A stretch of DNA of 64,000 bases from Polymyxa betae A26-41 (taxonomy: Eukaryota > Protista > Endomyxa: Phytomyxea): assembly GCA_003693705.1 (NCBI GenBank), contig RBZT01000323.1:1-64000 (forward strand), written 5' to 3'. The translations under genes and the position numbers were made by a program. Shown piece after piece: positions 1,880 to 6,052 of the stretch (position 1 is its first letter; each line of letters begins with the position of its first letter). A model generated the notes under the pieces. The model searched no databases, was not told the origin of the DNA, and saw nothing but the letters and a program-made list of their open reading frames with translations.

Positions 1880-3160
1880 CTAAATTATCTTAAGCAGTGA
1901 ATGATAAACCTTGTCGAAATCAGAAACAAACCAAGATCTACCTGGGTGGTATTCGATGGTGGAGCTTGATATTTTCATCGGCTCTTGATCAATGCGCTTG
2001 GCTGAGCCGAAATCCCCTAAATGACCCAAGCCACCTTGGTCTATGAACACGTTACCACTGGTAACGTCACAGTGAGCTAAACCGAGATCGTGCATTTCTA
2101 CGAGCGCACTATGAAGCCGACGCAAATATGAAGCCAAAACCAGATGTGATTGCGCAGGAAGTTGGTCAAGAGATGCGACATAGACGGGCATGATCAGACA
2201 AGCAGACCGCTGTCCCGATTCGAGAAAGGTTTCTTGTAGTGTGCCACTAAAATAAAATGAGAATCCAACGTCTGTTCCGAGAGACGTAAAGTTTGACATG
2301 CATATATTTCCATATCGACCTCCTCTAGACCGGCGAGATTGGACTCTTGTCTACAAATGGAACGCAAAATACAGAAATACAATACGGTTTGCATAGTGAC
2401 TTCAACTAACCGACGGCGTAGGATCTTGACTATTTTAGGCGATCCATCGATCAAACTGGACCCTTTAAGAAGATAAGGGTTGTTCGCAAATGCAAGACCG
2501 TCAAGACTGATTTTTGCAGCTTCAGAAATTCTAACCCTTGTTGCAGTGTGCGGAAGATCCTTGAAATAGTAATACAATGCAGAAGCACGTTCCGGATGGT
2601 CTGCGGTGAGTTCCATTTGTCGGCGTGCACGGATAATGATCTTGTCAAGGACATCGCCAAGTGGTGGGTTGATTTTACATTGGCGCAAAGACTGGATGAA
2701 TCTTGTAATCACTTGAGAATCTATACAATGGAAATATCAGAAAAATACCGTAAAATGTGTTCATAGTGATTGGACCATCAAAAAAGCAATGATAAATCAA
2801 GATAGAAACATGATTCATATAATCACGAAAAAAACAGCTAATATGCCTAATTCAAAAATAATCAATACACGATCAGTATAATCACTCACAAATCCAGAGA
2901 TAATCGTGTGAAATTCTGTGAAGTTTGGCAAACGTACCGGAAGGGGCGGCGGCGGGTGGATGCTGGCCCTTGGTGAGAGTGCACCCATGAATACACGGTT
3001 CGTCGGCATGCGACAGATCCAGAGGAGTCCCAAGCAACTCTTGGCGAGTGTAGCCATTTGACACGACATCGGTTTTGTGATTATGACTAAGCACTGCGAG
3101 GCAAGTCCGAGACATCGCGACTGACGGCAAGTCAAACAAAATCGTAGTGACGTCGCTCAC
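1880..3160 (-). CDS. Divergent Ser/Thr protein kinase (non-RD), multi-exon, possibly pseudogenised
   Basis: IVKIL (subdomain II), LIMPVY, HCDVTSGNVFID and LGDFGS motifs in ORFs 2194-2712 and 1880-2299; a frame change near 2245 needs a weak intron or a 2-nt insertion; both ends uncertain. Confidence 0.7.
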
Positions 3161-4072
3161 AGTATGATCCTGCCATCGCGTACTAATAATCTAAAATGAT
3201 GGAGAGTTCGGATAGCGCATACATCCAAAAAATATCATGATCAGATTACCGTAAACTTATGCTTGGAATGGATATGCGAGTCTGATTGATAGTGGTCTCT
3301 ACAGGACAATATTCAATTATCAAAGGCAACAAAAGATGCGATCTCCAAAATCAGCGCAAATCGCACTCTAGGGTTCCGATCGATACCGGTAGTACCCGAC
3401 TATCGGCGCTCCGGTAGTCTCCCGGTTGGATACCGGTAGATGGGTGGTACCCGACCCGACTACCGACACTACCGGCCTAGGAATAGTGAGTGCTGGAAAA
3501 TCTGCGTGGCGGACTTTGAAATCCTTCTTGTAATCTTGTTTCATACACGGAAGCGAAGGGCTGACGCTCCACTGTGCCCCGTAAATGCACCTTTCCTTTG
3601 CGCCAATCTAAGGATTGAAGTTTTCGATCCTGTCGTGAGTGATTACGAGCCCATAGCGTTGAGTAAAAGCTTCGGCAGTAGCCTTGTGTCCAACGTATTA
3701 TATACCTGATTCAGCATCTGGAACCGAGATTGACCCCAATGATGCTGAATCAGTTCAATGGAAATTGTTCAACAGCCGATAAACCCAAGGTGATTGTTTA
3801 TGATCAGATAAGCAAGACAGGCACAGATGGGACCATCACTTTTGCTTAAATTGGTGATATCATGCACGAAGTTGATAAGTATCTCAGCCTTCCTTGCGAC
3901 GGCACTTAGGTCGATCCAGTCGGGTTTTAGTGAGGTTGGGAAAGATATTCTCTCTATCCAAGGTTCATCGGTCTCAGTGGAGATGATTATGAACTGCGGT
4001 CGTGATTTTATTGGTCTTGACATTCATCGACTCATAAACATGAAACTTTAAGGACCCTGATATTTGGGGAAT

Positions 4073-4172
4073 TGTGGAGCACTGCTTAGTAGGCCCTTGA
4101 CTAATAGCTGTGGAGCTGTTATTGTACCTTGTGGTCAGTTAGTTGCTGTGAAGTCCAGGCGCAGTTTCTACA
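4073..4172 (+). repeat. LTR copy 1 (100 bp, TG...CA)
   Basis: Terminal TGTGGA/TCTACA imperfect inverted repeat; near-identical to copies 2 and 3. Confidence 0.85.
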
Positions 4173-4365
4173 GAATAACAGCTCAAAGGGTCGGGTTCGA
4201 GTCTCCCCTGTATACTGGACGTTTTTGGGTTCACTGGACCGGACCGGCTCACAACTCGTGAAAAGATGCGTGGTTCATCTGAGTTGGGGGTCACCTACTT
4301 AATTCTGCCTGAGGCCTGAGTGCCTGATTCTGGTGAGGAAGGCAGTCACATTCAAGAGAGGGGTG

Positions 4366-4461
4366 TGTGGAGTACTGCTTATCTAGGCCCTGGACTAACA
4401 GCTGTGGAGCTGTTATTGTACCTTTTGGTCAGTTAGTTGCTGTGGTGAAGTCCAGGCGCAG
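4366..4461 (+). repeat. LTR copy 2 (3' end shortened)
   Basis: Preceded by the polypurine tract; lacks the terminal tttctaca, consistent with a deletion between CAG microhomologies; followed by gaata like LTR1. Confidence 0.85.
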
Positions 4462-5448
4462 AATATGCAGCCATCCCTCGTTGAAGTTGAGTTTCCAGGC
4501 TAGGCTGCAGATCGACGTTTTTTTGCGCTGGGGACAGCAACCTCAACTGGTAGCCTCAAAATATCACAGATTCTTTGAAACGGTGCCAGTAAGTCACCGA
4601 AAGGACTTGCCTTGCGGCGATCTCTCGAACAGCATTGGGATCGACACAAGGATTGCGCAATCCTTGCGCCATGAAGCAGGTAAGCGGTCTTCCAGAACCT
4701 GTAGAAATTGCACTCCAATCTACTCGAAAACGCTGACGAGACGATGGCTGGAAATTGCGAACTATTTTATTTCCGGCAATTGTAGAACGTGGACACTACC
4801 CATTGGAAGGTTCCAAACTCCGCAACGGAGAAGCGCCACGGAACTGTGGAACCTAATGCTGGAATGTTCCAACAGAACCTTCCTTCAAAATGTGGTCCCA
4901 CAGTTTCCTGTGCTGATTCCTGCAGTGACCGCGCAGGTAGTCTGGGTTGTCGCATATATAGTAGCATGCCAAGCAAGTGACGTTAATATAGTTGGATATT
5001 TGTTCTCTGGGGAGTCCAATGTGCCAGCTGCAAAATGACGCGCCTTTTCGTTCAGGTACCCGTGTTGACTATGCGCCCGACACCGTAGATCCCAGAGGAC
5101 GATATGAGGATAGTCTTCGTCGTTTTTGAAGATTTACAGGTCGGGAGTCGGTGACAGGTCATACTTCTGTTTGATAGCGTTGATTTCTTCCAATACTTGG
5201 GTGTCTGATTGGTCATCTCGTTTCGGTTTCTTGCAACTCGGAGGCTGGCATCCATCCTCGTCCAATGGAGATTCGTCTTCGTTGGGCGAGATGGGTGTTT
5301 TCCCTTTTCCGTCTTGGAGAAACACGATCGCGTCCGAATTGGCGGAGTCGTACTCGAAACCATTACGTCGAAGTTGACTCTCGTTCTCGTCAGCATCACT
5401 AATCGGTGGGCTTGATCGTAGTCGGCGCCGCGACTCTTTCGAAGCCAT
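4462..5448 (-). pseudogene. Decayed gene fragment: acidic N-terminus plus a C2H2 zinc finger, captured between LTR2 and LTR3
   Basis: ORF 5134-5448 reads on past an in-frame TAA (IFKNDEDYPHIVLW...); after a frameshift, 4910-4975 encodes CLACYYICDNPDYLRGHCRNQH (C-x2-C-x12-H-x4-H); further stops downstream. Confidence 0.6.
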
Positions 5449-5482
5449 TGCTGATGCTCACAATGGTCGTAAATCGGGGTGT

Positions 5483-5586
5483 TGTCGCGAGATCTTGCTT
5501 AAGTAGGCCCTGGACTAACAGCTGTGGAGCTGTTATTGTACCTTTTGGTCAGTTAGTTGCTGTGAAGTCCAGGCGCAGTTTCTACA
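5483..5586 (+). repeat. LTR copy 3 (5' end degenerate)
   Basis: tgcttaagtaggccctggactaacagctgtggagctgttattg...gcagtttctaca; preceded by ggggtg as LTR2 is. Confidence 0.85.
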
Positions 5587-5913
5587 GAGGAATGCGCTTT
5601 AAAGTATTGAAATGACAGAAGAGCTGTTATAATGAAATTTGGGTCTTTTCTGAGCCTTTCTGTCTTTATGTGCTTCGGTAGCCGGTACTACCGGTATCCG
5701 ACCCGAACGGTACCGATCGGAACCCTAAATCGCAGCGAGACAAAGCGTCAGGCTAAGGACTTTTGCAAAAAATATCTGACACGTATGCGTCAAATTTGAA
5801 CTGCTTGATAACGGAAGCGAAAGAAAAACTGTTCGGTCCCTTGATTAAAACGCGACCTGGATTGGCGATTTCCGAGTACGGATATAGCGGGTAGATTGTG
5901 ACAGTCTCATTAC

Positions 5914-6052
5914 TGCCCATGCCTTAGTTCTGATAAAATTTGGAGGTCAAACAACAATATATAAACATGTCTAACCTGTTTAACTTCAAGCTGCACTGAC
6001 AGCAAATGATGACTTCCAAACCCCTGGGCGTCCGGGCAAAGTTGCCAAGACC
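5914..6052. repeat. Dispersed direct repeat, copy 2 (copy 1 at 250-387)
   Basis: Direct comparison with 250-387. Confidence 0.85.

Follow-up and report, generated by a model that had tools for sequence, protein, structure and literature searches.

An LTR element of a few hundred base pairs that has neither genes nor a tRNA-type primer-binding site raises the question of how its reverse transcription would be started. Such an element lies at 4073-4461 of the window analyzed here, which is a stretch of 64,000 nucleotides from Polymyxa betae A26-41. A first-pass annotation of this stretch had proposed that the RNA of the element primes its own copying, by folding an 11-nt segment of the LTR back onto the primer-binding site, as in Tf1 of S. 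pombe.

A repeat scan and direct reading identified two direct repeats, at 4073-4174 and 4366-4461, that are approximately 95% alike. Alignment of 48 copies, together with the target-site duplications, defined the family LTR as a sequence of 103 nt (TGTGGAG...CTACAGA) whose termini, as set by the duplications, are TG...GA instead of the canonical TG...CA. Non-canonical ends occur in known LTR elements and do not exclude membership among the TRIMs. The 5' LTR of the copy in the window (4073-4174, plus strand) is 102 nt long, with boundaries taken from the 48 aligned copies and from solo LTRs flanked by duplications of 4-5 bp. The second LTR (4366-4461, plus strand), aligned to the family LTR, comprises family positions 1-93 with a 3-nt insertion and lacks the terminal TTTCTACAGA (about 10 nt). 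Between the two lies a non-coding interior of 191 nt (4175-4365, plus strand), for which the genome matches were family members only. Interiors of 189-191 nt are too short for Gag or Pol, and coding capacity is absent. The interior ends with the polypurine tract AAGAGAGGGG (4354-4363) followed by TG, so that the tract and TG (4354-4365, plus strand) abut the second LTR; the same junction, with the tract AAGAGAGGGGTG preceding the LTR, was found in 13 family copies. Near the other end of the interior, direct reading found a B-box-like or tRNA T-arm-like motif, GGTTCGAGTCT, in the sense orientation at 4194-4204 (plus strand), and then TTTTT at 4222-4226.

The putative primer-binding site AATAACAGCTC is located at the canonical position, 4174-4184 (plus strand), and consists of the last A of the LTR and the first 10 nt of the interior, so that 10 of its 11 complementary bases lie outside the LTR. 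The repeat scan showed it to be the exact reverse complement of GAGCTGTTATT at 4113-4123 (plus strand; family LTR positions 42-52), which is the proposed self-primer and also forms the right arm of a hairpin within the LTR. The second copy of this LTR motif, at 4407-4417 (plus strand), forms a second exact inverted pair with the site. The first TGG 3' of the first LTR is found 35 nt downstream, and the element is without a TGG-type tRNA primer site. These results agree with the first-pass annotation on the direct repeats, on a non-coding interior of about 190 bp, on a polypurine tract abutting the second LTR, on the missing TGG-type site and on the exact 11-nt complement; its values for the LTR, a length of 100 bp and ends of TG...CA, have to be replaced by 103 nt and an end in ...CAGA.

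The 27-Mb assembly, consisting of 1001 contigs, was searched for related sequences, and the family was found to include at least 48 LTR copies; an interior is present in approximately 12 of these, and solo LTRs with duplications are numerous. With the whole element as query, six other copies of full length (86-95% identity) were obtained, together with several partial copies and many isolated repeats, a 21-nt word from the LTR located 45 LTRs in the genome, and 48 LTRs were aligned in all. The interior alone gave 22 matches, all of them to family members and none to an autonomous relative. Seven full copies have 103-nt LTRs and interiors of 189-191 nt. A natural solo LTR (L022:1502-1604, minus strand), identical to one in L023, served as the reference LTR. 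Exact-pattern scans of public metagenomes for relatives gave no matches.

Duplications of 4-5 bp were read at about two dozen insertions, solo LTRs included. Examples at full copies are TTCT, ATCT, CTTTG, GGATG, CCAT and CATG, and examples at solo LTRs are ACCT, CACT, GCCG, ATCC, CCACC, CAGG and GGTG, to which GACA, GTTCG, CGTCC, ATACC, TGTT, AGCT and AAAT can be added. The expectation of 5-bp duplications at other copies was thus confirmed as to their presence, and their length proved to be 4-5 bp rather than strictly 5 bp. The stretch in the window is securely identified as a copy of a TRIM family with a unit of about 395 bp, and its earlier designation as a non-autonomous TRIM is upheld by the other copies, the solo LTRs, the target-site duplications and the gene-less interior. 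Because the LTR pairs inside full copies are 85-98.7% identical and some solo LTRs are identical to one another, we conclude that the family was active over a long period and also fairly recently.

Candidates for a larger element, a coding version and an autonomous relative were rejected. A pair of LTRs on contig C189 that might have bounded a larger element consists of two independent solo LTRs, the 2.9-kb "interior" of the copy on contig C187, considered as a coding version, is a nested foreign insertion, and a match on contig C974 is a chance match in other sequence. The foreign insertion of about 2.9 kb in the C187 copy (L031:873-3746) lies within the TRIM interior, holds an assembly gap and has an end with repeated GTGTCCGACTCTATAG-like units.

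The pairing between the LTR and the primer site was compared with that in shuffled sequences. Among 200,000 shuffled versions of the LTR, 68 (3.4e-4) gave a perfect complement of at least 11 nt to an 18-nt window at the position of the primer site. The best duplex between the LTR and the primer site has an energy of -24.4 kcal/mol, compared with -13.3 +/- 2.4 kcal/mol in shuffles, and none of 2000 shuffles reached it. In the predicted fold of the RNA from the motif to the site, the 11-bp helix closes two small hairpins (z = -2.46). ATAACAGCTC is conserved in the copies that retain the LTR/interior junction, the exceptions being an old, rearranged copy on contig C431 and copies truncated at this place; divergent copies on contigs C112 and C90 are without the primer-site region. 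The pairing is kept in the copies that still have this junction, as the proposal of the first-pass annotation implied. Compensatory changes between motif and site, for which that annotation had also suggested looking, were not found within the family among the 48 aligned LTRs. Motif and site are invariant among functional-looking copies, and in decayed LTRs the motif mutates about as often as the remaining LTR, with changes that are uncompensated. Since the intact copies are invariant and uncompensated changes are expected in dead copies, the family gives no covariation evidence.

The motif also takes part in structures within the LTR. An internal hairpin, TAACAGCT-GTGG-AGCTGTTA, present in other copies as well, has a right arm that overlaps the motif and a left arm that resembles the primer site, and the repeat scan found the core TAACAGCT three times, in the two arms of the LTR hairpin and in the primer site. 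The whole 103-nt LTR (L022:1502-1604) is predicted to form a single long and imperfect hairpin (-40.2 kcal/mol, z = -3.3, reached by none of 200 shuffles), its halves being partly complementary, for example CCTGGACT and AGTCCAGG. If transcription starts between the hairpin arms, the motif would be free at the 5' end of the RNA and sequestered at the 3' end, which is an attractive idea.

Several analyses addressed the possibility that a tRNA is involved in priming. The motif GAGCTGTTATT occurs 69 times in the genome, compared with 11 times for the reversed control, and 47 of the 69 occurrences are at known places of the family. Among the remaining 22, the 20 that were examined (those on contigs C780 and C955 being left out) included four further family fragments, and none was in a tRNA gene. 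A set of tRNA sequences was assembled from an Rfam tRNA search of the genome, in which 63 of 1372 first-look candidates were scored; the resulting 38 distinct sequences, an incomplete set, represent 9 amino acids and 13 anticodons. Contiguous complementarity between these 38 sequences and the 60 nt around the site did not exceed 7 nt (GCTGTTA, in the anticodon loop of tRNA-Asn), a match that one G-U pair can extend. The absence of a host-tRNA match, on which the proposal of self-priming depended, thus held for the places examined and for this incomplete set. Within the same incomplete set, a half-tRNA site, with complementarity to about 12-15 nt of a tRNA 5' half whose end lies in the anticodon loop, was not found, the best match being the 7 contiguous nucleotides. 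The tRNA genes collected here (L085-L124) include two tRNA-Lys(CTT) genes with introns of different length, and at one tRNA-Arg(ACG) locus the start of a second copy follows directly.

No tRNA genes were found in the window by ARAGORN, and the region 3000-6000 gave no Rfam match to a tRNA or ribozyme at E <= 10. A retrozyme was considered and rejected on the same search, which found no hammerhead ribozyme in 3000-6000. A tRNA-like unit at 4130-4226 straddles the LTR/interior junction: an A-box-like stretch lies in the LTR, and the B box GGTTCGAGTCT is followed by an acceptor-like stretch and then by TTTTT. ARAGORN drew a poor 92-nt cloverleaf, with T and anticodon stems of 3 bp, in several copies at a threshold of 70% and none at 80-100%, and no host tRNA that could have donated the T-arm-like piece GGTTCGAGTCT was found in the assembly.

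The position and statistics of the pairing, the absent tRNA site, the fold-back relics and the analogous autonomous family that are described below make self-priming the best-supported mechanism, and reverse transcription of the TRIM is, to judge from the sequence, probably self-primed as in Tf1 and not tRNA-primed. In this model, the enzymes of an autonomous LTR retrotransposon would copy the TRIM through RNA and insert it with duplications of 4-5 bp. LTR positions 42-52, GAGCUGUUAUU, which would lie at the 5' end of the RNA or close to it, would fold back onto AAUAACAGCUC at the LTR/interior boundary, RNase H would cut after the paired segment, and the 11-nt RNA would then prime the minus strand through U5 and R. 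Three parts of this model are inferences, namely where transcription starts, that RNase H cuts as described, and which element acts as the helper.

A group of unusual products that might be expected from such a primer was found in the genome. At three loci, on contigs C618, C187 and C431, the 11-mer connects LTR sequence with the reverse complement of LTR positions 1-41. The C618 relic (L014:1585-1737) contains a complete LTR, the 11-mer and the reverse complement of LTR 1-41; it can be aligned over 154 nt, from one end to the other, with LTR(1-102) plus the reverse complement of LTR(1-52), and it ends exactly at LTR position 1. The relics on C187 (L031:613-713) and C431 (L143:~302-395) both consist of LTR 57-103, the 11-mer and the reverse complement of LTR 1-41, and the latter was reached via a loose contig end in the only public sequence run that contains the locus, a set of short contigs. 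The insert that contains the C618 relic (L014:1452-1737) has an inverted interior block on the left, and the repeat on its flanks, ATTCAAGCC, measures 9 bp instead of 4-5 bp; the insert looks like aberrant cDNA captured by repair and not like an integrase product.

The structure of the relics could be explained if plus-strand strong-stop DNA, consisting of the LTR and the copy of the primer, ends within the 11-nt copy of the site. The 3' end of this strong-stop DNA would anneal to LTR 42-52 of the same strand and be extended to the 5' end of the strand, which would give the relic structure. If the copy of the primer continued into a tRNA, an unpaired 3' tail would result and the fold-back reaction would be blocked. 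The relics thus appear to fit a primer of at most 11 nt, and this support for self-priming is indirect, because fold-back repair at the level of DNA, at the 11-bp inverted repeat, is an alternative origin.

Autonomous elements of the same genome were compared with the TRIM. There are at least 115 RVT_1 matches in the genome, and few of these loci were examined. One Ty3/gypsy element (C896:6254-11323) has LTRs of 175-179 nt that are 93% identical, a 4-bp duplication, ATAC, and domains for protease, RT, RNase H and the integrase zinc domain, together with a weak SH3_Tf2-1 match of 20 bits against a cut-off of 30. It belongs to a low-copy family, all copies of which are old and broken (L150:1501-1700 on C896; L151, C856:8059-8333, minus strand; and L153 on C424). 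In the C856 copy, an 18-nt site, ATAACCGAAACACTTTAT, begins one base after the LTR and is the exact reverse complement of ATAAAGTGTTTCGGTTAT at positions ~63-80 of the C424 LTR. This 18-nt pairing is exact between copies; inside each single old copy, one of the two sides has 1-2 substitutions.

This gypsy family and the TRIM have in common 4-bp duplications, a polypurine tract ending in GGGGTG, an LTR starting with TGTG and a site beside the LTR end that starts with ATAAC and can pair with a segment within the LTR; since the site starts with ATAAC, the primer would end in ...GUUAU in both families. The gypsy family differs from the TRIM in the length (18 nt) and sequence of the complement and in its LTRs of 175-179 nt, and the overall DNA similarity between the two was not significant (p about 0.1). 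Because a second, unrelated pair of sequences occupies the same two positions, there is covariation between families, although not within one. From its sequence, the gypsy family can be regarded as an analogue, perhaps a distant relative of the helper, and no demonstrated partner. No autonomous element sharing TRIM sequence was found with the whole element, the interior alone or the polypurine-tract/LTR junction as queries. The search for the autonomous Ty3/gypsy partner that the first-pass annotation had postulated gave a gypsy family whose site is complementary to its own LTR, and no element that shares the LTR or interior sequence of the TRIM.

Two other autonomous elements that were examined did not have this arrangement. 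An apparently intact chromovirus (L125, C854:12000-21000) has a frame of 1212 aa for RT, RNase H, integrase and chromodomain, 333-nt LTRs that are 97.6% identical and a 5-bp duplication, and neither in this element nor in an element on C669 was a TGG site or a site/LTR complement above chance found. The LTR of the chromovirus starts with telomere-like AACCCTAAACCCTAAAACCCTA. For the gypsy copies on C164, C307 and C714, primer sites could not be located, since none of these contigs includes both LTRs of the copy.

Self-priming has to be weighed against several other explanations. The 11-bp pairing could have a structural role in the RNA or cDNA, for instance as a U5-leader stem, as an element for packaging or dimerization, or as a part of the three-copy motif TAACAGCT, while another, unrecognized primer is used. 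The complementarity could serve such a role because the motif is also a hairpin arm and the whole LTR folds as a hairpin (z = -3.3), the three copies of the core in the two hairpin arms and the primer site point in the same direction, and TRIMs of bivalves are likewise without a conventional primer site, with no mechanism known (PMC6934838). However, no alternative primer site was found near the LTR end, the pairing occupies the very position at which a primer has to anneal, the fold-back relics are consistent with a cDNA that has its 3' end within the 11-mer, and the gypsy family shows the same geometry with a different sequence, which leaves a purely structural signal an unlikely explanation. 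Chance complementarity in a decayed element, which might be considered because one family was examined in depth out of many elements inspected, is extremely improbable in view of its frequency in shuffles (3.4e-4), its retention across copies, its use as the junction in the relics and the 18-nt analogue in a second family.

Two further explanations involve tRNA. A tRNA-derived Pol III unit, similar to that of Cassandra, might lie across the LTR/interior junction, with the A-box-like stretch, the B box GGTTCGAGTCT and the T5 run at 4222-4226 as its parts and the 11-mer pair as a remnant. The B-box match of 10/11, the acceptor-like segment and T run that follow it, the suitable spacing, and the 92-nt ARAGORN cloverleaf found at the same place in several copies at the 70% threshold agree with this possibility, whereas the poor stems of that cloverleaf (3 bp in the T and anticodon arms), its absence at 80-100%, the lack of an Rfam tRNA match and the failure to find a donor tRNA gene do not. 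Moreover, a Pol III transcript of about 100 nt could not serve as template for the element, the 11-nt complement would be left unexplained, and such a unit would not exclude self-priming; we consider this explanation improbable. Priming by a host tRNA fragment, such as a 5' half of tRNA-Asn(GUU) that results from a cut within the anticodon loop, in the manner of copia-type elements, appears improbable as well. Half-tRNA priming is known in copia lineages (PMC6317226), and GCTGTTA of tRNA-Asn can form seven contiguous pairs and one G-U pair with TAACAGC of the site; but these 7-8 bp compare with 11 perfect pairs of the self-complement, none of the tRNA genes found contains the full 11-mer, and strong-stop DNA would run on into tRNA sequence, blocking the fold-back products that were observed. 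Half-tRNA priming is a weak rival also because a 7-mer is expected by chance in that comparison.

Three further points count against self-priming of the TRIM. A transcription start at LTR position 42 leaves just 41 nt for the promoter; there is no compensatory variation within the family, and the changes in decayed copies are uncompensated; and no autonomous element with TRIM sequence was found, and the elements on C854 and C669 show no self-complement above chance. A more far-reaching proposal, which we offer as tentative, is that a Ty3/gypsy lineage of this protist self-primes, that a gene-less parasite of 395 bp inherited or copied this feature, and that the genome has kept fossils of a strong-stop fold-back side reaction peculiar to self-primed elements. 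If this is true, the fold-back fossils would be natural in vivo evidence for the element's own 11-mer as primer.

To our knowledge, self-priming has been demonstrated for Tf1 only and is elsewhere, in fungal, vertebrate and some plant elements, inferred from sequence. In a published account (PMC4600332), Tf1 is the demonstrated case, and self-priming of Tj1 and of the Tf1/sushi group is inferred. Tf1 and Tf2 of S. pombe, Tj1 of S. japonicus and the Tf1/sushi elements of the Ty3/gypsy class are similar to the TRIM in having a primer site beside the 5' LTR that is a complement of their own LTR, and no tRNA-type site, and the 11-nt pairing of the TRIM equals the length reported for Tf1 (PMC4600332, with papers by Levin from 1995-1998 that it cites). 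The Tf1, Tj1 and sushi elements differ from it in that they are autonomous, coding elements of 5 kb with LTRs of about 350 nt in fungal or vertebrate hosts, whereas the TRIM is a gene-less sequence of 395 bp in a protist, for which self-priming is predicted from sequence. In plants, 12% of LTR elements were predicted to prime themselves, in the Tcn1 and TAR lineages (PMC6317226). The plant Tcn1 (chromovirus) and TAR (Ty1/copia) elements resemble the TRIM in that the prediction was made from sequence alone and outside the fungi, and differ from it in being autonomous, no miniature derivative with this feature being present in that survey (PMC6317226).

The TRIMs of plants and bivalves fall into the same size class as the Polymyxa family; they likewise have short LTRs, a non-coding interior that is short, a polypurine tract and short duplications, and occur as solo LTRs, too. 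Plant TRIMs, including Cassandra, have a tRNA-Met primer site and TG..CA ends, whereas the Polymyxa TRIM has a self-complementary site and TG..GA ends; Cassandra TRIMs also carry 5S genes. Bivalve TRIMs share with the Polymyxa family the lack of a tRNA primer site and the presence of tRNA-like stretches in the interior, and no priming mechanism could be proposed for them (PMC6934838). A full-text literature search, with incomplete coverage, yielded no report of TRIMs whose primer site is self-complementary. If the TRIM is self-primed, all cis needs of self-priming would fit into a stretch of about 75 nt that spans motif and primer site, providing a compact natural substrate for study of the reaction; self-priming would be extended to a protist, and the spread of the TRIM without a match to any host tRNA would be explained. 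The fold-back relics also suggest a simple genomic signature by which self-primed families might be spotted in other genomes.

The copy in the window is part of a larger composite. A 5-bp duplication, GGAAT, at 4068-4072 recurs at 5589-5593, directly after a third LTR, and since GGAAT precedes the first LTR and follows the third, the insertion unit is 4073-5588. The 3' boundary of 4461 given by the first-pass annotation was thus set too early, the copy described above being the left part of a three-LTR unit that reaches 5588. The second LTR is followed by a second interior of 1034 nt (4462-5495, plus strand) that is unrelated to the first, ends with GGGGTG (5476-5481) and is unique in the genome except for a repeat of about 180 bp; its ends weakly resemble those of the TRIM interior, and its GGGGTG end is like the TRIM polypurine tract. 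The third LTR (5496-5588, plus strand), as aligned, comprises family positions 11-103 and is identical there to the reference solo LTR, the preceding 10 nt having diverged. The repeat of about 180 bp in the second interior, at 4698-4882, has four other copies in the genome (on contigs C743, C171, C128 and C548) at 82-97% identity. In the public run X1, one contig, with a depth of 33 that is above that of its neighbours, connects 4018 directly with 5658, leaving out 1639 nt, which suggests that the composite may be contained in a repeated element of which the other copies are without it.
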